Assembly (NCBI GenBank): GCA_013115145.1
Contig: JAAPAO010000232.1
Coordinates: 1-49,309 of the forward strand
Source: Perkinsus chesapeaki ATCC PRA-425
Lineage: Eukaryota > Protista > Perkinsozoa
DNA length: 49,309 nt
Direction of reading: 5' to 3'
Both the position numbers and the translations under genes were made by a program. The notes beneath the pieces are model-generated. The model made no database searches, was not told where the DNA came from, and saw only the letters and a program-made list of their open reading frames with translations. Shown here one piece after another: positions 4,801 to 48,640 of this stretch (within the stretch, counting starts at the first letter, position 1; each line of letters begins with the position of its first letter).

Positions 4801-7800
4801 TGCGGAGGAGGATTCTGTACCGCAAACCAGTAATCCTTTATATTTACAGAAGGTCAGTGTGTTGGTCCATCTTGGAGAAGGGATACCAGCACCACCAGTT
4901 GTTATTGATATTATTGATTTAGAGGGTGGACGAAGGAAAATAATGATAGGGAGGAGTATCTTGAGGTTGACCATGCAAGATACCAAGGAGGTCCAGCTGG
5001 AGACTAGTCCTAGATGGTATGCTGTTGATTCGTCTGGAGAGAGCACGTCTTTCAAAGATGGTCTTGAGGGGCAGCGATGGAAGAAAAGAGCCAAGCTTTT
5101 GGTTTCGGCAAGATATCATTCTTTGGAAGGTGCGTACTGTGAAGATTTTGGAAAGATTCTTCCGATCACATCTGAAGATCAAGCTAGCTTTGATGTTGTT
5201 ATCGACCTACTGGGTATCCGTGGAGTAAATGATACCATTAAGGAGTGTGATTTAACAGTACAGGGTTATTGGTCACACCGTGCCCGGATCGATGTCGATG
5301 ACTCTCCCATGCCCAATCCTAACTTTACACAATCTGATGGCGAGCTTGTCGGTATGAGGATTAGACCACCATTGTAGGTTAAAGTGGTAGCTAGGGGAAA
5401 TGGATGTCGCTTTGTTGATCAGGTTGACAGTACCAATATTGAAATGTATAGATGGAATACTGTTGCCTGATATACAGCTTGTTCTTACCAATAATGGTGG
5501 AACTAAGGAGTGCGGTAGAGTATCTTTGCCACTGTGTGATTATATGCTTGGCACTACTACGAAGCCACCGGCATCCTTGGAGACCTCGTCCTCCTCCTGC
5601 TTCGAAGGGGCTGTGCTGAATCCGGAGATGTATTGCTGTTATGTTGATGTGTTCTCCCCTCACAGTGGTAATGTAACCATCAATGATGATATCCAGGTTG
5701 GCAGGCAACTGTCGGGAAAAGATGATCTTGCTAGTGTTGAATATTATAAGGAAGGGAGTGGCAGGTTGAGAAGGACTTTGGCAGCGGTTTTGGATACTGA
5801 TGAAAATCTACACAGTGTGATGAGCGTATCTTTGTATCCTACAGACGCTTATCCAACATTAACAGTTAATAGGGACAACAAAGAACCGTTGGGTTGGTGT
5901 GAGCGTGGGCTTGGCTTGGATATGGATGGTATTAAGTCATGTCGAGAATTAAGGGAAGAGGCGGCTAAGAAGGGGTGGAGGATGGTATCCAAGCAGCATG
6001 CTTTACCTCATCAGGTTACCTCCCGAGGCAGCTACTGCAGCTGCAGCTTTGCATTGGTTTGATCAGGTTGATGGTGACTGGAAGAATCTACATACATTTA
6101 TGCGCTCAGTTGGGCATGTATGTGATCCAGCGGTTGGTGATAGTCTGATATTGGCAAGGTTTAGGATAGAGAACACTAATAACATCTTGTGCATTAAGGT
6201 GTTATTCTTATTATTGATGATGGTGATACTGGTAAGTTGTATGTTTGTAGATGAGAAGGTCCGTGATCAAGGAAGGAGAAGTCTATTCGGTCATTTGTGC
6301 CCCTCCCTGTGGTACAGCAGTGTTTAGTAAACCTGGGGAGGTGAGGATCTCGACCTATTTGGAATCTTGCACGCTTAGAGCTCAGATACTTTTTGTAATG
6401 AAAGATAGTAGTAGTGGTAGAAAGTTCGCTGTTACCACCCCAAGCTTCGACATGCGTTACCCCTTTGAAAGTGGCTTTATTGTGGCCAAGACACTCCATC
6501 AAAGGTCATCACTTGGAGCCTTTTGTTCCTTGTGATAATAATCAAACATAAGCTAGGTATGGGGATCTGGCTGCACGCATGCGCAACGATGAAGGGGACA
6601 GGATTGTGTGTGATCATTCATCGGTAGTCGGATGGTCGAGGTTGTAATAATTGGTGTTGTAATAGTCATATGTTAACGAGGGGGAGTTCATATTGAGATT
6701 GAGGAAGACAGGGCCTTTGGATAGGGACAGCGCACGCAATTGGTGATGACCCAGTGTGAGTATAATAACAGCACCATCGATGTCAGGTATATGTGGGCGG
6801 AGAGGAATGTTATTAGTTGTAATGCAGTGTTATACGGTTTGAATATTAAAGAACACTTTACCTTTGGAGAATCATCTAATAAAAAGTTGGGTATGATTAA
6901 AGGCAATCTTACAGTGGAGAGGGTGGATGACCCTCCTCATCATGACGATGATGATGTGAGATATTCAACTCCAGTAGATCGTGAATGGATAGTTGAAGAT
7001 GTTATAATTGATATATATATATTAACTGCTGAGGAGTTGGTAAGGGGGGAGGGTGAGGGTGTGATGAGGTTAGTAATGTGCATCGCAGGTTAATATGGAT
7101 ACCTTTGGGAAATCAGACCCTTATATTAAATTGGAAGTAGTTGGCGGAGAGAGCGGTATGAGCAAGAACGTTCATAAGGATAATCTCAATCCTCATTTCT
7201 ATGAACATTTCAAATTGAAGTGTAAAATGCCAGGTGACGAGGTGGTCGCAGGTTCGATTCCTGGATGAGGCATTTTTAAGCAGGCCACAGTATCTTGAGA
7301 ATCAACGTAATGGATGAAGATGTACTAGGATCAGAGTTGCTGGGGTGTACCGAGATTGATATCGAGGACAGATGGTTGTTGTTCCATCGTAATCATCTCC
7401 CCTTCATAAGCCCTATAGAACATGCGCCTATCAAAAGGGATGGTCAAATCACTGGTTATATAAGGTTCATAATATCAATATTGAGACTGGAAGTGTCTAA
7501 CCAGGTTTTGCATAGATATGCATAGAGCCGAAGTGCATTATAAAGAGATGCAATTGAACAACTTACTGCTTACCTCTTCGATGGAGTGTTTCGATATCAG
7601 ATTGGTTTTATGGGACGTGAGGGATATATCAATATTTAAAGATTATGGTCAAAGAAATGACGTATTGGTCGTAGCTAGTTTTGTCACCAAGACCTATGAT
7701 GGTAAGGAAGGGATTTGTCACTTCTGCACATTTGGCTTTATCAGGTAAAGTAAGTATTGTGACAAAGAGGACTGACGTTCATAAATTTGCTCATGATAGT

Positions 7801-8656
7801 GCCAGCTTCAACTATCGCATGGTATTCAAAGGCATAGAGGCGCCGGTTGCGTATGCTGCTCTCAAGTTTAGCCTAATGGATGCTGATACGATCAGCAAGG
7901 TAAAGGGCGCAGGTTCGAACCCCACCGGCGGTATTTTTATATCGTCCGCTACAGTCTTGTGCAATGAGCTGTCCCCTGTTGTTTAGGATGACCCTATTTA
8001 CCATCCTAAGATGCTCCCGCTTGATCATCTTATTAGTTTGGCTATTGATACTGATGAAGTGACACTAAGCCCTTGGGAAACTGAGGTTATCTAGCGACCC
8101 GCAGCTAGAGGTGTCAGAATAATGCCGAGCTTAGGTTGTATTCGATAAGTGGGATGAGGATGATACAATTGAGAATAAATGCGTCCCTTGTAAAAATGAG
8201 TTGTGGTGATCTCTCAAGCGATGAGGGTATCTCAGGTCGAAGGTCGAAGAAGGCGGTGACACCAGCAAGAATGAGGGTTGAAGTATGCGGGCTTATGCCT
8301 GATCGATTACTGAAGTGCATCCGTGTGTTGGTGATAGATTAGAGTTATACCATCAATATTAGCCGAGGAATGCCCAGTTGGTGAAGGGCAAGATGAGCCT
8401 AATAACGATCCCATATTATTACCACCGTCGGGGAGACTTCAATGGGCTTCGTTTATCAGCAAGCCTGGTGGGCGAGGGGGGAGACTGTCCCCTTTTTTGT
8501 GTGATGTCTTCTTGTGTAGGAGACTTTACCCGACGTATCCTAGGTCCAAGGAGGATGAAGTCCCTCAAGTGTTGTTGTGTAACATGCGTTGTTGTCTTCA
8601 TCATCGTCATCACGGCACTGGTGTTTGGGTTTTTGTGGCTTACATTTAAGAATTGA
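1880..8656 (+). CDS. Ferlin-like multi-C2-domain tail-anchored membrane protein, multi-exon
   Basis: C2 signatures LLIYKASNLAAADGTSSDP/YVKVEFDGKVHRT (~2070-2235), EYVLTVEILQGKAF...PQTSNPLY (4091-5377 ORF), MPGHSILRINVMDEDVLGSELLGCTEIDIEDRW, DIRLVLWDVRD...RTDVHKFAHDSASFNYRMVF, and a C-terminal TM helix ending FLWLTFKN*. 5' boundary approximate; could be two genes split near 3950-4090. Confidence 0.8.
7244..7277 (+). other. Isolated tRNA 3'-end fragment inside a 50-nt ferlin intron (7234-7283)
   Basis: GGTC-GCAGG-TTCGATT-CCTGG-ATGAGGC-A-TTTTT: T-arm, 7-nt acceptor strand, discriminator and T-run; upstream sequence is coding exon, so no 5' half. Confidence 0.7.
7909..7938 (+). other. Isolated tRNA 3'-end fragment inside ferlin intron 7900-7986
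   Basis: GCAGG-TTCGAAC-CCCAC-CGGCGGT-A-TTTTT, starting 9 nt after the GT donor. Confidence 0.7.
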
Positions 8657-8756
8657 ACTTTTCCGTTGTGGTATTGTCTATTGTAGTGTTTATATGTATT
8701 TTACACTTTTTCAATCAGAAGTTGTTGTTACTAACTCCTGCCTCTTTTCTTACATT

Positions 8757-10363
8757 ATGTTTCTCGATTGCATACCATTAGCCGGAAGCCGAGCCATCGA
8801 CCTCAAACCCGCTGAGCTTGAGGATAGGCTTATGCATCATAAGTAATCAAAAGATACAAAATAGGTTGACTTGCCTACCTTGACGTATATTTTCAGATAT
8901 GCTGCTGGTGAGTATACACCTCTAGATATGTTCTTCATGCCCTTCTGGAATGCTTGTACCGATGTAAATAATAATCATACCAAATTTCCGTCACATCATC
9001 CATCTTTAGGCGTTCCCTCGTACCATATCTCCTAATGCTATTACATTATCTGGATTCTTCTTCATATGCCTCATCTACGTCTTTATAGTCATGTCACCAA
9101 CCCGCCATGTCTGGCATTTCTTTGCAGCCGCCTTCTGCGTCTTCGCTGGACAGGTAACCACCAACAAACCTCCTCCTCCTCAAGAAGTATGATACCTTTT
9201 CAGACCCTGGATGCCATGGATGGTAAACAAGCGCGTAGGTTAGGTGTATCATCACCGTTGGGTGCCATCCTCGATCACGGTGTTGATGCCTGTACTATGG
9301 GCATACTCATGCTCTCTGTAGCGAGATGCCTCGGTGCACCTGGTAAGTACTTTCATTACATTAATTAATTATTATCAACCTCAGGCGAGTTCCCTAATGA
9401 CATCCCCGTAGCAGTTCCCGCTGTTCTGGCTGTGGTGTCATGTTTCTGGTTACCCCACTGGAACCACATGCACACCGGTAAATTACAAGTTGGTGGTGTT
9501 ACTGAAGCTCAAGCTCTCGTTGGCATTTTCTATCTAATTTGTGGTGTGTTTGGAGAGGACTTTTTCCGTAAAGATACCCTCTTCATCCCTGGTTGGACCA
9601 GAGGAGAGGTAACCCTCCTCCCATCCGCCTTACACTGCCATATCACCACCTTTTAGTTACTAGTGTACGCGGTTCTTATTGGGGCATCTTTGCTCTGTGC
9701 CTATGATATCCTTACCTGTCTCTTTGCTTCTAAGGATAAGGTTCATACTTCCTTCGGTAAGATGGTGGAGGGTGGATTCGAACCAGGGACCTTTGGGTTT
9801 TTATTAGGTTATCGTTTATATACCCTAATGCCTTTGGCACTTTTGTATTCCTGTGCCTACCTGATGGATGCTGGACTCCTGAAGACTGGCAAATCTTCTA
9901 TGGGTTATGTTCTCCATGCTAGTAATAACATCCACCCTGGTTCAATCCCCGGTCAAAGCATCTTATTTCAGTTGCTATATACTTCGTTCTTATCGCTGAA
10001 CATGTACTGATATCAAATGTAGTTGAAGAGTGCTACGTTAACAGAGCCTGCAAGGCCCTAATGCCCCTTATGCTCACTACAGCATTAGTGCTGGTAGCAC
10101 CACGACCTCCATTATGAATTAATTATACCGTATTTCCCTCAGATCATTCCTACCACATGGGTTAATCCTGTAATGGTATGTTGCTGTGTGTAAGTATCTC
10201 TTCTTTCTATCATTATTATTATCATCATAACAGATACGGTTTCCTGACCTTCTGCAAGATGGCCGCGACAACATTGAATGAGATGTGTAATGCACTCGGC
10301 ATCGACCTTATTAAATTACCCCCAAATGCTGACGTGAAAGGTGAAGCTAAGAAGACTGACTAA
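8757..10363 (+). CDS. CDP-alcohol phosphatidyltransferase (choline/ethanolamine phosphotransferase, CEPT/EPT family), multi-exon
   Basis: Family motif QTLDAMDGKQARRLGVSSPLGAILDHGVDA (DG-x2-AR-x8-G-x3-D-x3-D); N-terminal HKYAAGEYTPLD...FWN and ISPNAITLSG; C-terminal KKTD dilysine ER-retrieval motif. Confidence 0.92.
9763..9793 (-). other. Isolated tRNA 3'-end fragment, antisense, inside a 51-nt CEPT intron (9757-9807)
   Basis: Minus strand AAGGTC-CCTGG-TTCGAAT-CCACC-CTCCACC-A-TCTT. Confidence 0.7.
9936..9964 (+). other. Isolated tRNA 3'-end fragment inside the CEPT intron ending at 9971
   Basis: CCTGG-TTCAATC-CCCGG-TCAAAGC-A-TCTT. Confidence 0.6.
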
Positions 10364-10468: not shown

Positions 10469-11860
10469 ATGTCAGTAACAACTTCACAATTCTGGGATAA
10501 AGTCTGCGGCTCTACTATTAGTAACCCACCAACTGAAGCAACCTTGGTAAGGCCCCCACGGGTGCCATCTGTTATGCCGTGTGTTGTTGCCATTGCTGGT
10601 CTCATTATCGAGGGCCTCAGACCAATCCTTATAGGGGCACTTCTTACTGCACCATTATTGTCTGCTACTGCGCAAACAAGGAGACTATTGTTAATATTAG
10701 CAGCTTTTGTTATACCTGTTATGCTGTGGATGAGGTCAAGATATCATGTTGGTGGTCGAGAGATTAATCCTGGTATTTACGGTAATTTCAATAACAGCTC
10801 GTTGTCCAGTGCCAAGAGGATCGAGAGAGCTCTTAATAGGGCGGTTGACAAGTACAGACCGACGCCCTACCTTTTTAATGGTCACCTGCGTACAATAGTT
10901 CCCCACATTTTAATGCATGGCAGCGCCCCTCCACATGGTTTACGTCGTCGATGGTTACCTGTAGACGGTCAACATATAGGTTTAGATATTCTTTTGCCGT
11001 CGGATATTGTATGTCCTAGAGGAGTTTTGGTATTGCTTCATGGGCTCAATGGTGGCTCTACTGAGTCCTATGTGGTTGATATGTATAAAGCCTGTGAAGA
11101 GCGTGGATATGTGGCGTGCTGTATGTTGGGTAGAGGCCTTGCTGGTACACCCTTCACCGGCGGTCCGAAAGATACATTTTGCCCCAGTAGAGTGTCCGAT
11201 GTATCATCTGTTATCAACATGTTCCATACCTCTTGTCCAGGCCTTCCTGTTCATTTGGCTGGGTGGAGCCTCGGCGGTGTAGTGGCAGCTAATGTCGTCG
11301 CTAAGTGTGGTTCTGAGCTGAAGGGCGTGCTTACGAGCTGCGTGGTGGTGTCTGGTGGCCTTCGAGTTTGGGAGATATTCGATAGTCGATGTGCTGTGGA
11401 ATTATGGCATCCCTTATTAGCATTTGAGCTTAAGAGAAGTCTCCTCTGGCGAATGGTCAGCCTTACTGGTTACGAGCCTCAGCATGATAATTGGTATTAT
11501 AGTTGTACCAATCTTCTTGAAGTTGAAACTGCCTTGGTTGCTCCAGCGCATGGCTTTGATAGTGTTTGGGACTATTATAGAGCGATGAGTGCCGATGATG
11601 AAGGCAAATGTCGCGATATAACAGTGCCTACCCTTATCGTTCATGCTGCTGATGATCCTGTCATTCACGTCGATTCGGCCGGCCCTAAGCCCACCGAAGA
11701 GGCGCACGACTTATGTGAGTACCTCTTTGCAATTATAACCGAAACAGGAGGGCATGTTGGTTGGCCACAGGGGTACATGCCCTGGCAAGGGGGCTTTTCT
11801 TGGATATCTAACACTGCGATTGACTTTGCCGATGCTACCCTGCCGCATCAGACGTATTGA
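10469..11860 (+). CDS. Alpha/beta hydrolase, ABHD1/2/3-YheT family, copy 1 (intronless)
   Basis: LHGLNGG oxyanion segment, GWSLGG nucleophile, HAADDP (Asp), GGHVGW (His); N-terminal hydrophobic segment. Confidence 0.92.
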   Translation: MSVTTSQFWDKVCGSTISNPPTEATLVRPPRVPSVMPCVVAIAGLIIEGLRPILIGALLTAPLLSATAQTRRLLLILAAFVIPVMLWMRSRYHVGGREINPGIYGNFNNSSLSSAKRIERALNRAVDKYRPTPYLFNGHLRTIVPHILMHGSAPPHGLRRRWLPVDGQHIGLDILLPSDIVCPRGVLVLLHGLNGGSTESYVVDMYKACEERGYVACCMLGRGLAGTPFTGGPKDTFCPSRVSDVSSVINMFHTSCPGLPVHLAGWSLGGVVAANVVAKCGSELKGVLTSCVVVSGGLRVWEIFDSRCAVELWHPLLAFELKRSLLWRMVSLTGYEPQHDNWYYSCTNLLEVETALVAPAHGFDSVWDYYRAMSADDEGKCRDITVPTLIVHAADDPVIHVDSAGPKPTEEAHDLCEYLFAIITETGGHVGWPQGYMPWQGGFSWISNTAIDFADATLPHQTY

Positions 11861-11966
11861 ATATTTCTTTCATTATTGTTAGTATTATTATGATGGGTCT
11901 TCGTGATTCTCATCACCTTCTGATGTTGCGTTATTTCCCTATCACCCGTTCATTAGTCTTACCATT

Positions 11967-13445
11967 ATGGCTGCTGTTACTCAGAGGACTAGTGGTGCAG
12001 CACGAAGGTCCGAAGGAGGCAGTAACAGACCAAGGCCCAATATGCAAGTTGATAAGTTCTGGGATACCGTATGTGCTAATACACACCCATCACCACAAGT
12101 GGAAGTCCCGACCCAATCACCAATGGCACGAAGACCCTCGCCGTGGTGGACCCTGCTGTCTTTGATGAGACTTACTATTGAGGCATTCCGCTGGGTTATC
12201 ATACCTATACTAGGATTGGCACCATTGTTACTGAAACCATTTACTATATATGGATTGGCGGCATGCCTTCTGTTGGCTACATATCTTAGTGTTACATCAG
12301 ACAGATATCGTCCGAAGGGTCGTGCCACTCCTGGCATCGAGGGCCACACTGAAGGGACTGAGTTTGGCAAGCTGGTTGAAGATCTTCTTGAGGCCCGTGC
12401 CAGAGCTTTTAATCCTACACCGTACGCTATTAACGGCCATTTAGCCACTGCGATACCCTTTATGTTACAAAGATATAAAACACCTCAACTTAAGAGACGA
12501 TGGATGTATACAAAAGAGGAAGGCAGACCGTCTCAGTCTATAGCTCTTGACTGGTGTTTGCCAGCTGGCAGCATTGTGAAGGGCATTGTGATAGTATTAG
12601 CTGGTATTAATGGTAGCCCTAAAGAGGGATATGTTATTGATATGATTCAAACTGCCATTGGCCAGAGTTATGCAGTCTGCTGCCTTATAAGTAGAGGCTC
12701 GTCAAACACACCAGTTGTTGGTGGCCCTGAAGATGAAGGGTGTGGCTCGAGAGTTACCGATGTTGAAGAGGTTATTAATATTTGTCATAAAATAACCGAT
12801 AGTCACCTTCCTGTTAGTCTCGTTGGTTACAGTCTCGGTGGTATTATTGCTACTAACAGTGTAGCTAGACTCGGCTCGAAACTTAAGGGCAAACTGATCT
12901 GTTGTGTATCTATCTCTGGTGGACTCAAGATGTATGAAAACTACGACTTTCCAGCAGCCATTGATTTGTGGCAGCCCCTGATAGCGTACGAGCTTAAAAG
13001 GACCGTTGTTGGTCAGAGCATTCGCCGTAGTGGGTTTAAGCCGGCCAACGCCAAATGGTACGATAGTGATAGAACTGTATTGGATATTGATAAAGATATT
13101 ATTGCACCTTCACATGGTTATAAAGATTTTATAGACTACTACCATCACCTGAGTGCAATAAGCCCACTTACTAACAATAAAGGTAAAGATATAGCTGTAC
13201 CAACACTGTGTGTGCACGCGTATGACGATCCGGTCATCCACGTGGACTCAGCAGGTCAATTACCAAAAGATACTTCTCACTATTTGTTTACATTCGTAAC
13301 ACCTAGCGGTGGTCATGTTGGATGGCCGCAGGGTTGGGCTCCTTGGAAAAATGGTTATGGTTGGGTATCCAATACAGCTTTGGCTTTCATGAATATGGTT
13401 GCTTGTAATCCGACAGCTGTAGAAAAACATAATCAACTTCCGTAG
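11967..13445 (+). CDS. Alpha/beta hydrolase, ABHD/YheT family, copy 2 (intronless)
   Basis: LAGINGS, GYSLGG, HAYDDP, GGHVGW. Confidence 0.92.
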   Translation: MAAVTQRTSGAARRSEGGSNRPRPNMQVDKFWDTVCANTHPSPQVEVPTQSPMARRPSPWWTLLSLMRLTIEAFRWVIIPILGLAPLLLKPFTIYGLAACLLLATYLSVTSDRYRPKGRATPGIEGHTEGTEFGKLVEDLLEARARAFNPTPYAINGHLATAIPFMLQRYKTPQLKRRWMYTKEEGRPSQSIALDWCLPAGSIVKGIVIVLAGINGSPKEGYVIDMIQTAIGQSYAVCCLISRGSSNTPVVGGPEDEGCGSRVTDVEEVINICHKITDSHLPVSLVGYSLGGIIATNSVARLGSKLKGKLICCVSISGGLKMYENYDFPAAIDLWQPLIAYELKRTVVGQSIRRSGFKPANAKWYDSDRTVLDIDKDIIAPSHGYKDFIDYYHHLSAISPLTNNKGKDIAVPTLCVHAYDDPVIHVDSAGQLPKDTSHYLFTFVTPSGGHVGWPQGWAPWKNGYGWVSNTALAFMNMVACNPTAVEKHNQLP

Positions 13446-13540
13446 TGATGTGTTGTTGTTATTATTATTGGTTTTCTCTTACCACCATTCTTCGTTGTGT
13501 TGGTTTGGTTATTACTGTATTTCTAGGTATATTCAGTTAC

Positions 13541-14986
13541 ATGGCCACCGCCACCCGTAACACAGTGACATTAACAGAGCATAGCTCTACTTCTTCAGAT
13601 GCCCTGTGGGATAGGGTATGTGATTTAACATTCGACATGCCCCCAGTTGATGGCGAAGTCAGTAAAGCAACCCCTCCGACAGATAGACTATTTGTCCTTG
13701 ACTCGATGGTGAGGCTGTTCATCGAAGCTAGCCGGGAGTACTTTCCCTTCATTGTCATGCTATCTGTCCTCTACTACCGTGAGAGCGGCTATGGTGTGTT
13801 GTTGCTATCTGTTCTTGGTGTTTGGGGTGCATACCTTTTCACCACACGTGGTCAGTTTACACCCAGTGGTAAAACAGCTCCAGGTGTTCGCGGTGGTGAT
13901 AATAATGATGCTACAGGCTTTGTTAAGTTAGTTCATAAAACCTTACAGGAAAGGCTCGATGCCAACGAGATCACGCCATACGTTCTCAATGGCCATTGGG
14001 CAACCGCATTGCTGTGGCTGGTTATGGATTACAAAAAGCCTGAAATGCAAAGACGTTGGTTTAAAAGTGATGACCAGGAGCCAAATGTTCCGCAGTCTAT
14101 AGCACTTGATTGGTGCATTCCTAAAGGGGAGGTTAAAGGCATATACCTAGCTTTGCATGGTCTCAATGGTGGCTCTGGTGAAGGTTATGTAGTTGATTTG
14201 TACAACGCCGCAGTTCCTCAAGGTTATGCTGTGTGCACTATGATCTCTCGCGGGTTGAGTGGTACCCCGTCAACCGGTGGAGCAGATGACGCGTTCTCTG
14301 GCTCACGTGTATCTGATGCCCACAAGGCTATTCAAATCTGTCATGAAGCAGCACCTGATTTGCCCATCACTTTAGTTGGTTACAGTATGGGTGGCATTGT
14401 TGCTGCTAATACTGTTGCTAAATATGGTGCTGAACTTAAAGACAAGCTCACCTCCTGTGTTGTTATATCTGGCTGCAATACTCTATACGAGAACTACGAG
14501 TATCCCTCGGCAAGAAAGCTATGGCATCCGATGATGGCCGAAGAGCTGAAGGAAACAGTTATCGGTCCGATGGTGAAGAGAACAGGTTTTAAGCCTAAAG
14601 ACGATGATTGGTATACTACTCCGATGGGTATCGTCGAGCTTGATGGAGAGATAAACGCTCCTGCTCACGGTTTTGCGTCATTAAGTGACTATTATCACCA
14701 ATGTAGTTCAGCTAGTGATAAGACAAGTGAAGGAGGAAAGAACATCTCCGTGCCGACCCTGTGTGTGCATGCGTACGATGATCCCGTCTTGCATGTCGAT
14801 TCCTCTGCCTTATTACCTCCTACAGTCTCTAAGTACATGTTTTCCTTAGTCACACCTACTGGTGGTCATGTTGGTTGGCCGCAGGGATGGGCTCCATGGA
14901 AGCATGGCTTCCAATGGATCACCGGTACCATTATGTCCTTTTCCACCCTCGTAGCCGATAACCAGCAATTGCTCGCTAAATACTAA
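13541..14986 (+). CDS. Alpha/beta hydrolase, ABHD/YheT family, copy 3 (intronless)
   Basis: LHGLNGG, GYSMGG, HAYDDP, GGHVGW. Start placed at ATG 13541 by comparison with paralog N-termini; the ORF is open from 13445. Confidence 0.9.
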   Translation: MATATRNTVTLTEHSSTSSDALWDRVCDLTFDMPPVDGEVSKATPPTDRLFVLDSMVRLFIEASREYFPFIVMLSVLYYRESGYGVLLLSVLGVWGAYLFTTRGQFTPSGKTAPGVRGGDNNDATGFVKLVHKTLQERLDANEITPYVLNGHWATALLWLVMDYKKPEMQRRWFKSDDQEPNVPQSIALDWCIPKGEVKGIYLALHGLNGGSGEGYVVDLYNAAVPQGYAVCTMISRGLSGTPSTGGADDAFSGSRVSDAHKAIQICHEAAPDLPITLVGYSMGGIVAANTVAKYGAELKDKLTSCVVISGCNTLYENYEYPSARKLWHPMMAEELKETVIGPMVKRTGFKPKDDDWYTTPMGIVELDGEINAPAHGFASLSDYYHQCSSASDKTSEGGKNISVPTLCVHAYDDPVLHVDSSALLPPTVSKYMFSLVTPTGGHVGWPQGWAPWKHGFQWITGTIMSFSTLVADNQQLLAKY

Positions 14987-15138
14987 CCATTCCTACTATA
15001 TGGGCCCTGTTCTCTCCTAGTAGTATGAGCCCTTCATAGATTTGTCCCTATTCCCTTTAGGTTATAGTAGCTTTAGGTTCACATCATTTCTCGCGTTGTG
15101 TTATTATTATATGACCGATAGGGGTTGCCACTTGTTCC

Positions 15139-16644: not shown

Positions 16645-16799
16645 TGGACATTCTGCACAGTCCTTTTCTGAGAGACTGTAGCGCAACAACGCTGTTAATA
16701 AGGATTCATACTTCCCTGTCAAATTTATTGTTAACTATTCCCCATCTCTGATACTCCTCTTTTTTCGTTCAGTAATGTCAATAATAGATCAGCTTTCAG

Positions 16800-36777: not shown

Positions 36778-38097
36778 ATGAGCCATGAGAATGTCCGGCC
36801 ACAAGTCATCCGAGAGCTCCTCAGCCAGCTGCATCGGCAACAGCCCATCAACTTGCTTAACTCCTGTGGGCCTTGTGCCCTGCATGATGATATTCTCATC
36901 GGCCGAGCGGCTCCTGGTAGGCGTAACTCATCACGTGGTGCTCCAGTCTAGTGTTAGGTGATTTAAAGCCAAGTTGGTTGAAAGAGCGAAGAGTGTCCCT
37001 TCCGAATGGTGGCCAGGACCCTACAGAGATCCATGCAGTCATTCGTGGACCGGATGATTCTCCCTACGCTCGAGGCTTCTTCACTGTCAAGTAAGCCGCC
37101 CTTCTAATGTCTTCTTCGTATGCTGACCGTTTCAGACTATTTATCGAGGCGGGGTTCCCTCGCGCTCCACCACGAGTCGTTTTCGGCACTAGAGTGTTCC
37201 ATCCAAACGTGTGCGAACTCACCGGCGATGTGAGCCATCATCGACTCCCAAGACCGAACTCTCGTCAGGTGTGTAAATTAGCGTTACACCGGAAATGGCG
37301 TCCGGAGCAGTGGAGTCTCGAGCGTTTTATCGACGGCCTAGTTGAGCTCATGGAACAACCTTCCATGGATAAGCCTCTCAACATGACAGCGGTAGGCAGC
37401 CATCTGGTCTCTGCGGTGGAGAGCTCTCCGCTGACAGGCTCGTCTTTACGCGGCTGATCGTGATGGTTACGATCGTCGAGCTCGATTGTGTACGGTGATG
37501 CATGCCTTGCCGCGGCCACTAACTCCGGTGAAACGGCGCCGGGCCTCATCGAGCGGCACGGCAAGCGAGTATGGTGGATTTGGTGGATACCCGACGTCTG
37601 TTGACGACATTTCTCTGGAAGTGAGTCGGCTACCTGGAGAGAGGGTTGATTACTTCATTCAGGACTTCGCTGAAGATGGACTGATAGACCTGGCTGCCAT
37701 CGCTGGTGTGAAGTACCCCACAGATTTCCCACTGAGTCTCGCGACATCTGGTGACGCCCCGGAGTCGGAGTGTTCCGGTGAGAGTGGTCCGCCGTCTACG
37801 CCGTGCGCCATGAGCATCGACGGTTGCTCCGAAAGAAGTGAAGGTCCTCGTCGACGTGCCCCGCTGGAGATTGAGATTGATTCTAGCAGCGACGAAAGCG
37901 AGGGGGAGGAGTTGCAGGCTTACTGTGAGGAGGTTTTGGTGACTCCACGGAGATCAGAGCGTCGATGCTCCCCTTCATCCGAGGGTCGCAGCGCCAGTCG
38001 ACGGCTGGCTGGCACCCCCAAGGGGGGCTTATTTAGCAAAGGTGGGTTGATGAGTGCGTACGTTTGGAGAAGTTCTTGTCAGATGCATCACCGGTGA
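36778..38097 (+). CDS. Ubiquitin-conjugating enzyme E2, UBE2S/UBC22-like, with acidic low-complexity C-terminal extension, multi-exon
   Basis: N-terminus MSHENVRPQVIR, GPDDSPYARGFFTV, FPRAPPRVVFGTRVFHPNV, a Cys-containing VCK segment, DKPLN and ARLCTVMHA all parallel the UBE2S/UBC22 pattern. Confidence 0.8.
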
Positions 38098-38479
38098 CGA
38101 GCGGATCTGTACGCGTGCGCAGCTCGCGGCACTGCACCACACCGCATAGCCCGTTCCTCGGCACGCCGGTCCGATCAAAGAGAGGGCCGGGGAGCTCACT
38201 GAGAAGATTGTAAATATAGACAACTCAGCGTTGACGTTAAGTCGATGCGCTTCCTGAACACGTTCATTACTTCTGGTGTATAATTAACTTCATCTCTCAA
38301 CCCGCAGCAGCAGCAGGAGCAGCAGTCTGAGTTATCGTGCCACCATTAGTGTGAACGGTCATCTCAGCGGCTGCACCAGCAGCCTAGTTGTAGGGTGTAG
38401 CAGTTCTGCCATGACCATGGTATTGTTATGTAGTTGAGTTGTCAATACGGAACGGTTTTAGAGGTTGTTGTATTTCAAG

Positions 38480-41400
38480 ATGGTCATATCGTCTGATGCT
38501 GCTGTTGAGTGCTTGGATCGCTACCTGGCGGTGAGGCAAACTGTGACGGATGCTGGATGTGATTCTTTGGTGAGTTCCTGGTGCCGATGCGGTTAAGTGT
38601 GATTGGTAACTTCGCCGTCACCGTCGGTTTATCATAACCCGACGATGCTGTAAAAGTGTAGTCTTCTCCGGAGTTCTTTGGAAAGTTCCGGGCTTCGCGA
38701 GGGTGGTGTCATGGAAGGGAAAAAATTGGAAATATAAAATTAGCGGATCTCTCAGATGAAGCTTCCGGAGCATTTTCTAGGAACTGGTTGTCCATGATTG
38801 TCTGGCGAGCGACACACCAGGAATAGATTGATGGTCTTCTGCTGACTCACGTCATGGTTATACGGGTTCATAGAAGATGAATTCACTTACTGGGCACAAA
38901 TGTTACAATTCATCTTTACGGTCAACGTAACTTCTTCGTACAAAGATGTTGGTGTATAGGTGCTCGTGTGTGGTCCTGATGGTCGCCTTAACAGCGGTAG
39001 CATTCACTGTGTGCTGCACCTCCTGTACGGGAAAGGTAGACTGGTTGGGGTCTAGTGTAGTGAGCAGTTGCCATTAGTTGGACGCGCTCTTATCGGTTCG
39101 GAGTTCTCCGGCAGAGCCGAGGCTCTGAATGAGGTTTTTATGGTCATCACTGCAAAGGCTGATGGTTGGAGTAGTGTAGCTGCGAAGTCGATGGTGGGAT
39201 CTGACTGCTCCGCGCAAAGGTACAATTTTCTGTCCAAAAACAGTCGCGGCGGAAGTATCTGGATTAACGCGTCTCTGGTCGTGCACGCTGGTGAGGGGTG
39301 GTTATTGGGTGATTGGAGGCGAGTGAGAGTTGGGTAGGTGATGACAGCTGATTTGGAGGGAGATATCGACGAGTACGATTCCTATAAGACCGGAGCTTTC
39401 ATCAGGGCGCTGGAGGGGTCAACTAGCATTGGAGTGTGCCCGAGTGGTAGGAGTTTGGGTGGGTGCGGAGGATGGTGATGGTTGGTAGTGATGGAGGGGG
39501 AGACGAGAGAAGATAACGAGGTTAAGATGTGTGTGGAGAAATGGCCGTTGGTGAGTAAATACTGGAACCGAGAATCGAACTCGGGACCTATCGCGTGTGA
39601 GGCGATCGTCATAACCAACTAGACCATTCCAGCTGTGCTTTTTTTATTACAAAGCAGATTGCCGTGCTGACCCTGGGCTCAGGTTAAAGCTTATGGATAC
39701 GAGGATTTTGCCACCAATGGCTTTCTCACTCTCTCTCACCCCACAGTTGATCTTGGTGATACCCTCCTTGCTGGAGTCATGTCAGCTTGGACGCCGGCTG
39801 CTGTCGAACGAGCTGTTGCTGGTCAGCCAATTAAAGACTTGAGAGTAAGATGGTCTGGTTATTTATTGATTTATAATAATGTATGTGTTCATCTCTCCAT
39901 CGGCATGTGAATGGTCTGATATTGTGATGGAAATGCCCCTACTGGGAATCGAACCCGGGGCCGTGTCATGAGATTGTTGGTCAGGCTGCGTGGCAGCAGA
40001 GCATGGCCGCCGTAGAGAGGATGGATTTGAAGGGAGAAATCGTCCCGGATGAGATAGGCAAGCCTCTGTTAGAGCTCTATGAGTGGGGCATTAGCGGTAC
40101 CCGGCCTGTGGGGAGGGCCAATGGGTAGGTACGGAAGAGTGAGTGATGACGATGGTGTTGTGGGCGGCGACGGACGGCGGTTGAAGGCTGAATGCTGGAT
40201 TGAGAAGCATACCTGTGGAGGCATGGAGAAGGATGGTGATTGTATGGTGAGTGTGGATATTGGGAAGTTGATTAGAGAACAAAGTTATATAACTCTTATA
40301 CACAGCTTTTATAAATATCACTCCCTAGCACTGCGATCTTTGCAGAGTCATCATCCTTACCGTTGCTCGTGATAATATATGCAAAAAGGTAAATGACGGT
40401 ACGCAGTCCAATGGCTTAGATCTGGCTCGGCGTTCATCCGGAGACCAGCATCGCCTGCACTCGGACATACTTGATACCATCTCACAAAGCTAGTGAGGAG
40501 GACATAGATGAGATAGAAACGTTAACGCTCGAGGCCATTGGATTGGTGAAGTAGGCCTGGTTATGGTCTTGGGTAGTGTGAGGTCGATGAGCTCAGAGAG
40601 GCTGTTAGTGGTGGGGGTGTTGATTATGATGATAGAGTTAAAGTGGATTGGATCGATGCTTATGGACTGATATCCACTTCGAGGCCATCTGTGAAGGGGA
40701 CAAACTGTGCCTTCATTTCTGTAAGGCATTTGTTAGGGAAAGGGTAATGTTGCAGTGCAGGCTACTGTTACTAAGGCGGGCCTGAGGGTGATGTACGGTG
40801 ACACATACTTTGTAATAATCCTTCTGAGTTGGTCATTCCCATACTCCTGTCAGCTTCCCTCGGGCGAGGGGAGGGATGCCGTCTCGGTGACCAGGGCAAT
40901 CCCACAGTTGACACCTGCGGTTTGGGGCTGCTCCGCTGCTAGAGTAGAGGATAGGCGAGCCGTCGAGGAGGACGCTCGCAGGTCGGCATGTTTGATGGGG
41001 ACGGTGATGACCGATGGGGGTGGTAGGTTCCTAGAAGGTCACAGAGGAGTTCAGTTCGGCAGACTTTTGCTTAACTTGCGGACGAGTGAGGGAGGTGATG
41101 ACAGCGAGAGGGACGCCACGAAGAAGCTCGGCAAGCTCGCATTGGCACCTCCCGACGCAGCGAGCCGCTCGAAGGTTGGTGTTTGGTAAGGAGATCGGTA
41201 GTGGTGATTCGGACTAAGCCGAGGTCAGGAGGGCGCACGGTGGTGGTGGTGACAGGACACTTGTCGGATGCGCTCAGGAAGGCCTCGGGAAAATCAGCAT
41301 GTCCGGCGGCTTGAGAAGGTCGCAGTTTGGTGATGCATTTGTTAGATACTCACGTGGGCTGGCTTTGACAGGCCAGGGAGCTGGAGCATTGGTGGCGGAT

Positions 41401-44400
41401 CTATCGGGGGATAGTAGGATGGGTATAGTTGAAGGAGTGAAGGGAGGAGGGTGAGCTGCTGCTGGTGATGGGTGTGGTGGTGAGGGTACTTGAGGAATTT
41501 AACACCAGTGTCAACTGGTGCGCGGGAAAATATAACTTAGTGTTGTTGATTGATCATTAAACTGATATGAGCGCAAGTTGCAAGTTGTTGGACTGGTGGT
41601 GTAAAAAGCCGTGTTAGATGGGTACTATAAAGGACAAGGAGAATATGGATGAAGGGCTGTGCCGAGAATTGAACTCGGGACCTCTCGCACCCTAAGCGAG
41701 AATCATACCACTAGACCACACAGCCGATATGTTTAAACATCTATTTTCCCTGTCGTGTGGTGCTGCTGCCCAATCCCCAAACCCCTTCCTCGTCAGCCTA
41801 TGGCTCGCCGTGAACATAAAGAAGAAGTACACTTTAGTATTTCAACTTCATCGGTCGCCATTCCAATCCGGAGAAACAGAAGACTACCTTCCGACACCGA
41901 GCCGAGTATTGCAATTGTGGAAAGACAACGGTGTGCCGATTGACCTCCTGAGTGTCCACAATCTCCCCGAGGAAGTACAGCGCTTGCGCGAGGTCTCCAA
42001 AAAGTACCCTTGTAGATTGCGAGATTCCTCAACGACGAGGGAAGTCCTGGGCGGCTGGTGGCTGGCGGGGCATTACAGTGATGACTCGACTGCATCGACC
42101 TCGTGGAAGCTCGTATTTTCAGTCGCTTCACTACGCCCTGCATCGAGCCTGGCTCTGGCAAAGGAGCTCTCTTCATAGCTGGTCTACCAGGATCGGAGGT
42201 ATCCACCTGTCGTCTCGCGGCTAGACTGGCCCACCGGCTCAACGCCGAATGCCTCGGACTGTCACAGTGGAAAGATGCTGGTGAGATTGCCGACATCGAA
42301 TGGCAGTAAAAGTTATAATAGCGTCTACCAGGTGATATCCCCCGCGGCAGTGAGTTTCTGGTGGTTTGGAGTACCACCGTTGAGGATGTAACGCTCCTTC
42401 CTACCCTGTACCTGGCCTCAGGGCTGTTGTCAGTCTCTGGAGTTCATCATCGCTCTCGATAGCCAAGTTGATCTTATCGGTTTCATAGTGGCATTTTTGG
42501 ACCGACAAACGTGAGTGTCTCCGAAGATAATGTCCTCTATCGTGTCGATCCAAGATACTTCCCCTTCGGTGATGGCCAGAAGATTCGACACCCGCTGGCG
42601 GCCCGCCTTGTTCGGGCATGCAGCTTGGTGGTCCTTCCTGAGCAGAGCCAGTCTCAAGCAATATATTCAGATTTGAAGGCGATGGCCGTTTCGGTAGGTG
42701 CGCCAAAACTTGGTGAGCTGAGCGTGTCTGTTTTACCGTGGAATAGAGCGCTGGCTTGTCCACTCATAACCCGGTCAAGATGAGCAATATGCCGTCGTGT
42801 CGTCGACGAGGAAATCAATCGGAATTGTTTCGGAGCTTCGCTCATTCTGGGGAGCATATCGGTGGTGACGATTCGGTGGGAAAGTTATAGAGCTCGAAAT
42901 GTTTTGCCATTTTTCGAACCAAAGTGAACTCGGGTGATACTTCTTGGGAAATTTGAATTTGTTTATAGAATTGACTATCATTTGCTAATCGCCAGTTGCT
43001 TGCTCCTGGAGTAGCATTATTAAAAGGAAATGAAGCATCTTGATAAAATGGAAGAATGTCTTATTATGTCGTCGATAAGGTGCCGATGCTTGTTGGTGGT
43101 GAGGAGAGACCGGGAGAGGTGATCGAAGAGTTGACCGAGGGAAAGCGTGAAATAGTATGCACCTATTCGACTAGAGAAATGACACTGTTGGTCAATCCAA
43201 GACGGTCACTTGTTGAGGTTGAACTAGAGGTGGAGATGCCCTCAATCTGAGCTAAAGATATGCCTGGAGGTCAGTTGCCGACTGCTGGTCCCGGAGCAGT
43301 ACTCTCGAGAGAGAGCCTGGGTAATCTCTGCCGCCGACTCGGGCCCGGGCGACTCAGTGAATACACCGATCCCACGAAAAAGTTGGTTGCTTTCATCGAG
43401 CGATCGAGCGTGAATCGCCGAGCAGATGGCCGTTGCCCGGCGGCGCGGTGCTCCTTGCCGTGGACGCTGTCTGCGTTCTCGCGGATAGGGAAGGTTCAGC
43501 TGCTGAGCTCCTGGTTAGGGTGAAGAACAGTGAAAGTAACCCAGTAGATCGGGGAGAGTGACAGCGCTGCTTTCTATAGGGAACTGCTGGAACTATCCGA
43601 TCGAGGGTCGGGAGGACGGCGTAGTCGGAGGCCAATCGCCAAGGATTATGGCAACGTTTTTGTTGACGCATGGCGGGTGCATCGTCTCCGACCTTAAAGA
43701 GGTTGAAAAGATATTCTTGGTTCCGCGGCAGTCCACAGCGCTCAGGCGTTCTCGTCACTGTTGCTGACGAGATGCCTGCCTGAGGTCACGATACGGACTG
43801 GGCAGAACGCTGTAGGATTTAGTGGATTTCCGTTGGTCATTGGAAGGATCAGATGATTGCTGATGGAGTTAGGGAGGCTTTGATTAAAAGTGTTAAAGTG
43901 GAGGAGCTTCCCAATGGCTGGTTGTTTGATGGCACATTTTACCTGGATACCAATACTGGCCAACGTGAGCTTTAAATCGGGAAAACGGTGGCAATGGTGG
44001 CCGAGAATGATTCTTTTAAATTTTCAATGGAATCGACAGAGATCTTTTAATCTTTGAGAATCATCTAAGCGCTTGTGAGAGATCATCCTGCGGGAAACAT
44101 ATCATCACTGCTTACTCGTTCCACTTGGCACGACCATCTGGATTCAGCGTTCAACCGTATAGAGTAGATTCAACTGATCATACGGAAACGTCGACATATC
44201 TTCTGGCTTTGCAGTATTCTCAAATTCACGACTTTTCTTCATTTTCTGGGCGCAAGAGCTGCATAAGCGTCCATGAGGAGCTCTTGGTTGAACTTTTCCC
44301 TGATAATTAATTTCGACTAGGAAGCAAGCTTCGTCCGGAGGTGTCGGCGCGCCTGGCTGAGTACATCACTGTTATGCAACAGGAGGTAAATCGCTGCCAG

Positions 44401-44484
44401 GTTTCTTGGTGCAATTTGTTCGGTCAGGTCGAGGCTCATAATGCCGCAGTTGCGGTGCTGAGGAGCTCGGCGATCGTGCATTGA
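38480..44484 (+). CDS. DNAAF9: DNAAF9 / C20orf194 / Shulin-like outer-arm dynein assembly factor, many exons
   Basis: Hand-spliced exons match recalled DNAAF9 blocks in order: LVLVCGPDGRLNSGS, YKTGAFIRALEGSTSIG, VEKWPL|VKAYGYEDFATNGFLTL, EIGKPLLELYEWG, LQLWKDNGVPI, FIAGLPGSEVS, ELPNGWLFDGTFYLD, RPEVSARLAEYITVMQQE|VEAHN...*. Not all internal exons resolved. Confidence 0.8.
39560..39633 (-). tRNA. tRNA-Val (anticodon CAC), antisense within DNAAF9-like intron 39551-39682
   Basis: GCTGGAA...ATCGC-CTCACAC-GCGAT...CCGAG-TTCGATT-CTCGG-TTCCAGT-A; complete cloverleaf. Confidence 0.95.
39934..39965 (-). other. Isolated tRNA 3'-end fragment, antisense, inside DNAAF9-like intron 39845-39984
   Basis: Minus strand CCGGG-TTCGATT-CCCAG-TAGGGGC-A-TTT; no D-arm or matching 5' acceptor strand upstream. 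Confidence 0.7.
41654..41725 (-). tRNA. tRNA-Pro (anticodon AGG), antisense, within the span of the DNAAF9-like gene
   Basis: GGCTGTG-TGGTCTAGTGGTATGATT-CTCGC-TTAGGGT-GCGAG-AGGTC-CCGAG-TTCAATT-CTCGG-CACAGCC-C. Confidence 0.96.
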
Positions 44485-45283
44485 TAAAAGCATGTTGTTG
44501 ATGGTGTATCTTTTCGAAGTGCTGTAGTTGTTTTGTTGTCACTGGCAGTGGGGCTGATATCTTCATACCGACTATTTCGGCAAAGACAGAAGTTTGCTAG
44601 ATTACCCTCTGGTCATTTCAGGTATTCCTGTAATCATAAAGGAGTGTCATTCTCATCGCATTACATTCAACGTTGTCAACGTCCTTCTATCAACCATTTC
44701 TTTTCCTCTCGAGGCTCTCGAGAGAATTCGTACTTGACCGTATTTCAATTGATGGCTTCATGAGGTTTCAATCAGGCCCCTTTTTATTGGCTTCTCGCCA
44801 CTCAAGTCCCCTTAAGCATGCGCGATAGCTCTGCTGCTCGCCATCGAACCCTATTGAAGAGGTTCATCACATCCATTCCCTTGTTAATACTGTTACCATT
44901 TGTTATTACCATAATAAAACCGTTGTCTGTAATTGTTGTTGTGGCAGCAGCATCATCATCGTCGAGCGAGTATGAAGAAGTAAGTTGAGTGGATTTAGCT
45001 AACCGCTTTATGTTTATTGGGATACAGGTAGCGCCTTTTTTCCTGGGCAACGTGGGTGTTAAGTTGGCATTTCGGGAATGCCGTTTCCGTAGTACAATCT
45101 CTCCTCAGTACTCGATCGAATACTACTACGAAAATGCTGCTGCTCCACAGCTTCTTAGAAATATCCACTTGAAAGTTTCATAGGAATGTTTTTAATTCGA
45201 TGACGCTAACTACTTTATAAAATGGACGTTATTCTCTCTTGTTTAATCCATAGATATCCGAGGACGTCAGCGACCTGTGTGAG

Positions 45284-48200
45284 ATGGTAGAGCTGGGGGA
45301 TGGCACCTACTACCTCGTCGCAGCCTACAAGGAGAACGCCGTGGCGGTAAGATTTCTTTCAAGCGAAAGTCCGCCATTTCTGTCTCTCAGTTGGCCAGCA
45401 CTCGCTCTGGTTCGAAGCAACCTTATGTTCGATGCAAGCCTGTTGAGGAGCCGATCTTCCGTTCCTTTGGTGGCAAGTTTGTCGTTCAAAGCACCTGTGG
45501 ACTCTCCACTGTTCGCTTTTATTTTAAAGACCAGCATGGCGCTGCCGACTTCGCAGTGCAGTGGGGCGGCGTCACCACGGTGAGTTTTCCAAGTGTGGGA
45601 AATATCTTAAGCTTCTTGTAGGTTGAGATGGTCGAAGATTACTTGGGCAAATCGCCAGTCTTCAACTCTCCGTCGTTGGGTGAAAATTTGAAGCTGGTGA
45701 AGGCTGCCGTGGAGCATTCTCCCGATCATTACTTCGCCACTGGTCGGAGCCTCGAGGTAAGGACTTCTCGCTGGGAGACGATCGAAGAATCGATTTTTGT
45801 TGTGTTGTTTTGGCGGGGTAGTTCCCCCCACTGTCTTCTAGCTGCATTTTCCTTTCTGAAATTTTCCTTTATAAAATCTATCTTGGTTCGTCCGATATTG
45901 TTCTCCGATCGTTCGCCGCTGCCGGGAGACTCGAGATGATGGTATGTGATTATTATCCTTTCCGTTCTGTTCTACTCTGTCAAAGATTCAAAATAGGTTG
46001 ATTGAATGCCTCCAAGGCTTACGTGAAAACTAGGCACTGAATTAGATCTCGAATATCGTATGTTCTTCCTTTATTCAATCTGTGTCGTTTTCCTTCCATC
46101 TGTAAATATTATATATATCACCATTAATGAAATAATAGTAATATCACCAGATATAAATCACCATTATCTATTAATCATTCATCAGTTAATATTTACTAAT
46201 CATCGTAATATAGGGGCTCATAAAAGACAGCAATACGGAATCTCCTAAGATCTTATCTCGTCTCCAACACTATATTTTCAGTTCACTGTTGGTGGGAATT
46301 CGGAACGCATCAGCCTGGAGTGCGATCCAGTGACCGAGCAAGGTACATCTAAGAAGGGCTACTCCGCTGATGAAGGTAACCATTGAACGATCCTTCTGGT
46401 GGGCAAGGGTTCATCTGTAGCTGGCTCGAGATTCGCGGTGAAGGTTGAATGCAGCGAGAAGACTAAAGGGAGAGTCACCCTCAATATTCCTTTCGAGAAG
46501 AATTATGTGGCGAGTGACTTTGCTGCTAGTTGGGGATACTTCACTCATGCTGTAAGCTGATTAATCGATTAAAATGCTCTCACTGGGATTCGAACCTGCC
46601 TCAGATACGAGTTAACACCAGCAAGGCCGATCCTGAAATCACCGATCTTCGGGTTGAACTCAATCTCGACTCCAAGCGCCCACGCGAGCGTCTTATAACA
46701 GTAAGCGACAGTAGGGTTGTGGCCGACTTAATCCGATTCACTTTCAGTATCATTCGGTGAAGTACACTTGCGGTGCAGTATTCTTCGCTGATGAGGTTGA
46801 CGGCGCATTTTCAATGAAGGCGAACTGCGCCAAGATCGGCGTGTGGCAGCGTGAGGATGTCGAGTTCAAATTCAAAGACATCACAGAAGGTCGCAGAATC
46901 GCGTATGAGCTCGGCGGCTACCGCGGGGTAAAGATTCCTTTTGAGGTCGCTTTCTAACATGTGGTTTAGGTTCGTAGCGACCTGCTCACCAAGATCAAAG
47001 ACGGGCGTGTGTTCGGTGAAAAGAGTAGCATCGCCAAAGTGACAAGAGCTTCGGGTGAAGTCAGCCTGGCTGACGCCGAGAATACAATAAAGCAAAGGCT
47101 CGAGGTAAGGATAGGGTTTCTGATTCCTCTGAATGCCGGTCTATTAGATAACGCTTGAAGATGGGGAGACCAAGTCGATGCGCTGCCTGCCGATTGAGGG
47201 CACCAACGGTCTTCGTGCGTCATACGGCAATTTCTTGCTCCAAGCGAAATGCAGTGGACTCTTCACCGAGCTGCTCTTTGAGGACGAAATTAGTATGATG
47301 GCATTCGCTGTCGAATGGGCCGGATATCGCCCCATGGAGGAGGAGCTCCAGATTGGGTTCCGTGACAGCGCCACAGAGGTTCAGATCCAACCTCGAGGAG
47401 TCAGCGTGGCGACGGCGTTCCCGTTGGGGATGGCCTATGCTGAGCGTTGGGCGTCGTATTTGGATAGGAAGGACAGAAGACTGAAATCGAGAAGAATCTC
47501 GGTGAGGGATTCGTTGGTTGCATTCTGATAATTAATTATTAGTTTAATTATTTTTTGGGCCGGTGAATTCAAATCCATCCGGGATCAAAGCCGGATGGCA
47601 CTCCAGGATGGAAGTATGAATTTTTGCGTACTGATAAATATTCATAACGATAATCTCTCAAATGTATCTCCAACTCGCAACTCGAGCGTCGCACAGATGT
47701 GGGTTGTCTCCGGCTATCTTCAATCGGTCGTTTACTTTCTACATCAATCGCCGAAATGAAGTCTCCGAGGAAGTTGGGACGATGGTATCCTTTTATGGTC
47801 TTCCTTTCCAGATTCACATCCCGTCCTCCTACATTCGCTTCACCGAATCTTTCTATTGCCACCGTGTGAAGGAGCCAGTTCATCCAGTCGAAGCCAGCAA
47901 CAACGGCGGCACTCATTACGGTGTCACAGCCTATTGTGGTCTCATCGGCTTCGATCTGAGAGAGCCTGACCCGAGCAACTGGCAGTTGAAGGTCACCACT
48001 GTGTTCAAGGATGAAAGTAAAGCCTTGACCATGGCCAAGTGGTGGGGGGGCTACTGGGGAGTGAGTGGCTTTGCATGAGGAAAAGTTGGTATGAGAATTC
48101 GCTTTCAGATCAGCGGTCGTGATTGCCATCAATTGGATATCGACAGCAAGACGGTGGCTGGCCCGAACGGCGAGATTGTGGCGTCCGTTGAGATAGATCC

Positions 48201-48640
48201 TTTCTTCAAACCTCCAAAGATAGTCGGCAGTACGATAACGGTGAGGTCTCGGGTTCGAATCCCAGAGGCGGCAGTTATTCCCACTTTTTTAGGCTGCCGG
48301 TAAGGACTACTCCTGCAGTGGTGTTGAGCAAACGATCAGCTATTTAAATAAGAATTACGATATCTCTTTAAAATGCGAAGAGAAGCCATCGAATCTCCAC
48401 TGCAAAAGCCGCAGCGGTTCGTCCCAATTCGCGCTGCAATTTGGTCTCTTCAAGGAAGTCACGGTATGAATTAAAACGGATGAATCGATTTTACGGTTTT
48501 TCTATCAGATTGCGATGCATCAAACCCTGCTGGATAGCTGCCCTTATGTTATGGGCGATGGCGTCACCGGTGAAACATCTGCCGCTACCTTGTTGATCAA
48601 AGATGGCGTGAAGGACGTTGGCAATCGGCTAGTTCAAGTG
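45284..48640 (+). CDS. Cluster of multi-exon genes (about three) containing six copies of an unrecognised Cys / F-x-D / FA-x-x-WG repeat domain
   Basis: Spliced in-frame models start at 45284, about 46282 and 47662, each carrying C-x(11-26)-aromatic-x-hydrophobic-x3-C ... [FL]-x-F-[KE]-D ... FA-x-x-WG-type units; gene boundaries uncertain. Confidence 0.65.
46571..46599 (-). other. Isolated tRNA 3'-end fragment, antisense, inside a 53-nt intron (46552-46604)
   Basis: Minus strand GCAGG-TTCGAAT-CCCAG-TGAGAGC-A-TTTT. Confidence 0.7.
48244..48273 (+). other. Isolated tRNA 3'-end fragment inside a 52-nt intron (48241-48292)
   Basis: AGGTC-TCGGG-TTCGAAT-CCCAG-AGGCGGC-A; removing the intron restores the frame into repeat copy 6. 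Confidence 0.7.

Follow-up and report, generated by a model that had tools for sequence, protein, structure and literature searches.

Why should tiny spliceosomal introns carry what reads as the end of a tRNA gene? The question is raised by contig JAAPAO010000232.1 of the shellfish parasite Perkinsus chesapeaki (assembly GCA_013115145.1), the whole of which, 49,309 nucleotides (nt), was analysed and is referred to here as the window. An earlier note on this DNA had singled out seven short GT-AG introns, each holding the tRNA-gene B-box motif GGTTCRANNCC within a tRNA 3' end; we call these elements tails. They are a real and selected class of intron content that has apparently not been described before, as full-text literature searches for introns with tRNA tails, in Perkinsus or in any other organism, turned up no account of them.

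Tail-bearing introns and their tRNA likeness

Seven matches to GGTTCRANNCC were found on the two strands, starting at 7251 (+), 7912 (+), 9774 (-), 9939 (+), 39945 (-), 46586 (-) and 48252 (+), as compared to 0.57 expected from dinucleotide-preserving shuffles of the window. None of 100 such shuffles reached seven and the maximum was three, in agreement with the previous estimate of less than one match by chance. Matches with one mismatch are at expectation (17 independent matches versus ~16.5), with tail features in none of them. As there is no such excess, there is no series of decaying copies, and within the window the B box is either perfect or unrecognisable.

Each of the seven matches lies in a short intron that begins with GT and ends with AG, at the positions first proposed. 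Two tails are found in a C2/ferlin-like gene, s1 (7243-7277, + strand, tRNA positions 44-73 plus T5; B box 7251-7261) in intron 7234-7283 (50 nt) and s2 (7904-7938, + strand; B box 7912-7922) in intron 7900-7986 (87 nt), and two in CEPT, s3 (9763-9792, - strand; B box 9774-9784) in intron 9757-9807 (51 nt) and s4 (9931-9960, + strand; B box 9939-9949) in intron 9922-9971 (50 nt). A DAAF9-like gene carries s5 (39934-39963, - strand; B box 39945-39955) in intron 39845-39984 (140 nt), 312 nt from a tRNA-Val gene. The remaining two are in repeat-domain genes, s6 (46575-46604, - strand; B box 46586-46596) in intron 46552-46604 (53 nt) of a + strand gene and s7 (48244-48273, + strand; B box 48252-48262) in intron 48241-48292 (52 nt). 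Both orientations relative to the host gene are represented, as had been claimed, s1, s2, s4 and s7 being sense and s3, s5 and s6 antisense.

The two CEPT introns are proven by spliced RNA, since 9756/7-9806/7 and 9922-9971, each with GT..AG at its ends, are absent from contigs of four public runs; the same contigs define seven more CEPT introns of 42-54 nt. The C2/ferlin-like gene has no RNA coverage in these contigs, and there the evidence for intron 7234-7283 is that the segment splits a Pfam C2 domain, leaving profile positions 15-59 in the upstream exon and 64-92 in the downstream exon. Removal of the other four segments (7900-7986, the sole evidence for this intron, 39845-39984, 46552-46604 and 48241-48292) joins open reading frames of the + strand. 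As calculated from annotated gene ranges and product lengths, ~14% of the window is intronic and about as much is intergenic; the intronic position of all seven tails is far from random relative to coding DNA and mildly non-random relative to other non-coding DNA (~0.55^7). An ab initio gene finder, which recovers all nine RNA-proven CEPT introns and mis-calls others and was therefore used for rough counts only, places ~30 introns (22-40) in 2432-10363 when its path is forced, four of them with tails.

The tRNA 3' geometry of these elements had been called exact, and this holds for the register though not for the complementarity of the T stem. In tRNA numbering, G45-G46 is present in five of the seven copies and the full AGGTC variable loop, found in both real tRNA genes of the window, in two; C72 is present in six, the discriminator A73 in all seven and T at position 74 in six. 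Five copies end in GC-A and none carries CCA, all as originally described. The tails align collinearly with real tRNA tails, with positions 44-74 in the correct register, and a hidden Markov model (HMM) built from ten tails, with no real tRNA included, recovers as its next-best matches in the window the tails of tRNA-Val (expectation value, E, 0.003) and tRNA-Pro (E 0.31) and nothing further. The collinearity, the register and the HMM together support the tRNA-gene origin suggested at the outset. Outside the GG/CC pairs, 10 of 21 T-stem pairs form versus 7.8 in a control combining strands of different copies; the pairing is at chance and the T arm is not complementary. The T stems of the real tRNAs (Val and Pro) pair fully.

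ARAGORN and the Rfam tRNA model detect in the window only the intact genes for tRNA-Val(CAC) (39560-39633, - strand) and tRNA-Pro(AGG) (41654-41725, - strand), with no cloverleaf at the seven sites, which confirms that no whole tRNA is present there. Lowering the Rfam threshold to E 10 yields no partial tRNA match at the tails, either in the whole window or in a 2.8-kb sub-search of 7200-10000. The A-box consensus is not enriched in the window (15 matches versus 18 expected), and at ~44 nt upstream of the B box the seven tails have none except for a one-mismatch match at s2, which lies within a conserved C2 coding exon and was judged to be chance. The only exact A-box consensus of the window, TGGCCAAGTGG at 48032-48042, is 210 nt upstream of s7 and is probably also due to chance. 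As cloverleaf and A box are missing and the T stem is unpaired, the elements are remnants of tRNA-gene 3' ends and not tRNAs, tRNA halves or SINE (short interspersed element) heads.

Mean column identity across the copies is 65% with the fixed motif included, and the agreement is mainly in the B box. As the earlier note had argued, the tails are not one SINE family, though several of them share CCCAG..GGCA-Tn, which may reflect descent from a few source tRNAs.

Conservation between Perkinsus chesapeaki and Perkinsus olseni

Orthologous introns were compared at CEPT, which was reached in two P. olseni assemblies via the neighbouring hydrolase gene; the comparison thus covers two tails, s3 and s4, in two species. 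All nine CEPT intron positions are common to both, and the two tail introns are found in P. olseni with an intact B box. The CEPT proteins are 86.7% identical and yet fourfold-degenerate sites are just 40% identical, indicating that neutral sites are near saturation. Optimised global alignment of the seven motif-less introns gives 44-56% identity, which is the noise level, whereas for the two introns with tails the values are 73% and 64%.

For s3 the B box is GGTTCGAATCC, GGTTCAAACCC and GGTTCAAATCC in the window and the two P. olseni assemblies, and for s4 it is GGTTCAATCCC, GGTTCAATTCC and GGTTCGATTCC. The species agree at each of the 16 fully specified positions, whereas three of the six degenerate ones (57, 59 and 60) differ, and it is at degenerate positions only that the two P. 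olseni assemblies differ from each other. As the motif was ascertained in P. chesapeaki only, the comparison is unbiased, and the probability of retaining the 16 positions by chance is ~0.4^16. Good conservation extends to the ~8 bases 5' of the B box, with 13 of 16 retained, but not to the acceptor strand, which at s4 reads TCAAAGC, TTGCGGC and TTGGGGT in the three sequences. One of the conserved copies is sense (s4) and the other antisense (s3). Judged from these alignments, purifying selection keeps the B box across species and in both orientations, which supports a suggestion made earlier, that the tails are retained functional modules in the form of TFIIIC B-box sites. Two other suggested functions fare less well: with an acceptor strand that changes between species, an unpaired T stem and neither a 5' half nor CCA, the tails do not qualify as split-tRNA halves, and the first three of these features, together with the occurrence of both orientations, make them unlikely sources of tRNA fragments. 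Gene conversion from real tRNA genes was considered as a cause of the conservation and is unlikely, since the shared tract is 11-20 nt long and degenerate positions inside it change.

Searches for orthologues of the C2/ferlin-like gene, using the exon open reading frame 4091-5377 as query, gave nothing in a word-indexed search and only matches of 25-35% identity in an exhaustive one. In the P. marinus and Logan loci of an ATPase-cyclase gene, and on the P. marinus hydrolase contig, orthologues of the tail introns were not reached. With ARAGORN, the four relative loci scanned (L001-L004) yielded no tRNA gene.

Two further tails were seen in these relatives. In P. olseni, a tail at L002 7482-7521 and L001 7467-7505 (GGTTCGATCCT or GGTTCGATTCT, then ..GCATTTTT or ..GTATTTTT) lies where no gene is annotated, ~600 nt upstream of CEPT, and has T at position 62, a base that it shares with the window's real tRNA genes. 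In P. marinus, a tail at L003 2973-2983 (GGTTCGATCCC, then ..GGGCATTTTT) is located in a 2.5-kb gap between exons of a P4-ATPase/guanylate-cyclase gene. The window orthologue of this gene (25886-35351, - strand), a 2504-amino-acid (aa) fusion of P4-type phospholipid ATPase and guanylate-cyclase domains that has a tandem duplicate in P. marinus (L003), is without a B box.

Possible function and origin of the tails

With moderate confidence we propose that the tails are relics of tRNA-gene 3' ends residing in tiny introns, whose B box is under purifying selection and would most likely serve as a high-affinity TFIIIC site without an RNA polymerase III (Pol III) gene. Each element would be what is left of a tRNA gene's final third, comprising the variable loop, the T arm with the B box, the 3' acceptor strand, the discriminator and an oligo-T stretch. 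Its tRNA function would have been lost, as 5' half, A box and T-stem pairing are gone, and selection would have held the B box, together with the ~8 bases 5' of it, from a time before the divergence of P. chesapeaki and P. olseni. High-affinity TFIIIC binding to tRNA genes is universally determined by this B-box sequence. An asymmetric motif that is conserved whichever way it faces, and that forms no RNA structure, points to action on the DNA and not through the host transcript, putatively the docking of TFIIIC in the absence of a Pol III gene, as at yeast ETC (extra TFIIIC) sites and lone B boxes elsewhere. The intronic siting could be explained by introns being among the few places in a compact genome able to keep 11 fixed bases. 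Enrichment, intron siting, tRNA register, loss of structure, cross-species selection and lack of orientation bias are directly supported; binding of TFIIIC, and any effect it might have, is a plausible step beyond them. It is conceivable, though we hold this only tentatively, that thousands of tails in tiny Perkinsus introns would make up a genome-wide set of TFIIIC-bound sites inside genes that RNA polymerase II (Pol II) transcribes, an architectural or regulatory layer undescribed in any eukaryote.

Several observations weigh against the proposal of TFIIIC sites. All seven tails are intronic and none lies in the intergenic ~45% of the non-coding DNA (rough P ~0.015), a distribution that a pure TFIIIC-site model does not predict and that hints at a link to intron origin or splicing. 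The CAT that follows the acceptor strand is partly conserved, which B-box binding alone does not account for, and the cross-species evidence comes from two of the seven copies in two species. In addition, TFIIIC bound inside yeast Pol II genes can block elongation. The exclusively intronic siting may point to tRNA-gene tails as the seeds of part of these introns, because the variable-loop AG/GT together with a terminator T run followed by AG constitutes a ready-made intron of ~50 nt.

How the tails came to be in introns can be viewed in more than one way. Two intact tRNA genes lie inside the annotated DAAF9-like range, one of them 312 nt from s5, a setting that would fit tRNA genes eroding within introns. 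The capture of fragments, either of genes or as 5'-truncated copies of pre-tRNA, would equally explain why only tails are found, with oligo-T and without CCA. In P. marinus, tRNA genes are very many and Dada transposons target them (PMC3706591), and introns are mostly short (PMC3101222). In the repeat-domain gene the intron 48061-48108, located after a WG motif and homologous to that of s6, has no tail, which suggests that tails and the origin of this intron series are not linked.

A stronger version of the capture idea is that a mobile, introner-like intron-generating element, or 5'-truncated pre-tRNA retrocopies, made the introns and that the B box is a passenger or the promoter of the element. 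It would account for the CCCAG..GGCA and T run common to several copies, for a 3' end that is always kept with oligo-T and without CCA, as expected of 5'-truncated copies of a primary transcript, for the resemblance of the variable-loop AG/GT and of the T run followed by AG to splice signals, and for the fact that every copy is intronic. Yet near-identity among the copies is lacking, neither terminal repeats nor target duplications are seen beyond the usual AG/G, and both CEPT tail introns, being common to P. olseni, are old; a passenger would not stay perfect amid a scrambled intron, and the tail-less homologue of the s6 intron is also difficult to reconcile with such an origin. We therefore consider it unlikely. 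That the tails are small Pol III units, in which B box and oligo-T terminator yield short RNAs, appears quite improbable. T4 or T5 directly follows A73 at s1, s2 and s6 and likewise in the P. olseni copy of s4 and the P. marinus copy, but the T run is absent at s3 both in the window and in P. olseni and broken at s4 and s7, a correctly spaced A box is lacking save for the chance-level match inside the C2 exon, and the RNA contigs, which test this poorly, have no starts or ends at the tails.

The motif is also the universal T-loop sequence and is always located in RNA that is transcribed and spliced out, so that GGUUCRANNCC in the pre-mRNA or the excised intron could be bound by a tRNA-modifying or -processing enzyme or by a splicing factor. 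Such a role at the RNA level is very unlikely, given that three of the seven copies are antisense, that antisense s3 is as conserved as sense s4 and that the T stem is unpaired; furthermore, copies with A57 do not keep the palindromic core, and likely branch points are found closer to the 3' splice site. Two related ideas were rejected on these last grounds, namely that the motif acts as a palindrome (TTCGAA reads the same on both strands), which A57 copies break, and that it is itself the branch point, for which better matches sit closer to the 3' splice site. Finally, tRNA genes are so numerous in Perkinsus (PMC3706591) that fragments of them may be common, and the tails might be neutral relics or a chance excess without function. 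This is already contradicted by the shuffles, by the conservation of all specified positions where fourfold sites are 40% identical, and by the lack of a one-mismatch excess, and we give it hardly any credence.

If the B boxes are bound, as the TFIIIC-site proposal holds, Perkinsus would be a case of Pol III promoter relics kept by selection at high density in Pol II genes, and a link would be drawn between tRNA-gene turnover, intron content and the control of chromatin or transcription in a compact parasite genome. The tails would then also bear on the open question of very short introns, where their sequence comes from and why it is kept, and would make it testable in an organism that can be cultured. 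On the practical side, they can mislead the annotation of tRNA pseudogenes and of introns in Perkinsus.

Host genes and comparison with known systems

Both intact tRNA genes lie inside the range of an annotated 2235-aa gene (36778-45351, + strand) with a UQ_con domain (37107-37454) and DAAF9_N; this annotation may be a fusion of two genes, a UBC gene and the DAAF9-like gene. A crude ab initio gene model places tRNA-Val(CAC) probably in an intron of the latter. At CEPT, an RNA contig of run X2 has a loose end, ACCGTAGCCATCTTGGCTCA, directly before the AG at 8717-8718, and ACCGTAGCCATCTTGGCTCA plus AG reads as a Perkinsus-type 22-nt spliced leader of the TCTT variant (PMC3101222). CEPT is thus trans-spliced 38 nt upstream of its ATG (8757) and is a separate mRNA; the public annotation merges it with the upstream C2/ferlin-like gene (2432-10363, 1896 aa). 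The RNA contigs also contain a second form of CEPT (8964-10338), with exons 85-90% identical to the window and splice positions that are the same or a few bases off, which may be another haplotype, a homeologue or a close relative in the same runs. Directly downstream of CEPT are five intron-poor alpha/beta-hydrolase (ABHD3-like) paralogues in tandem (10469-18269). The array is also found in P. olseni (L001 10001-18049; L002 10001-18018), while upstream of CEPT the two species have different genes.

Among known systems, intron-nested tRNA genes have a counterpart in the window itself, where the two intact tRNA genes lie in the range of a host gene beside a tail intron. Those genes are complete and functional-looking and reside in introns or gaps of ~200 nt, whereas tail introns measure ~50 nt and hold non-functional remnants. 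Introners and introner-like elements (PMC9860276, PMC12130899) resemble the tails in that many short introns owe much of their sequence to a recurrent module, which occurs in both orientations; they are recent, near-identical, multi-copy transposons with target duplications, whereas the tails are old, have diverged except in 11 bases and occur in more than one species. With tRNA-derived SINEs and TFIIIC-bound Alu elements (PMC7014570) the tails have in common that they are DNA derived from tRNA or Pol III genes, and the B box of those elements recruits TFIIIC within Pol II genes. SINEs, however, have a 5' tRNA-like head with A and B boxes and span 100-300 nt, and of the gene the tails retain no more than the final 30-35 nt.

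In the gene-dense genome of the protist Dictyostelium, B-box motifs likewise occur apart from complete tRNA genes, as isolated or external B boxes (ex-B boxes), and putative sites of the Pol III complex have been described there on the ribosomal DNA (rDNA) element (PMC5391098). Unlike the tails, the Dictyostelium motifs flank real tRNA genes or sit on the rDNA element and are not in introns.

The ETC sites of budding yeast and the COC (chromosome-organizing clamp) sites of fission yeast are few and intergenic. Like the tails, they consist of a lone consensus B box with no A box or Pol III gene, are conserved between species and are presumed to act at the DNA level independently of orientation. 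The Perkinsus elements, as candidate TFIIIC sites, differ in being frequent (seven in 49 kb), in residing in spliceosomal introns of Pol II genes and in that the rest of the tRNA tail is still visible.

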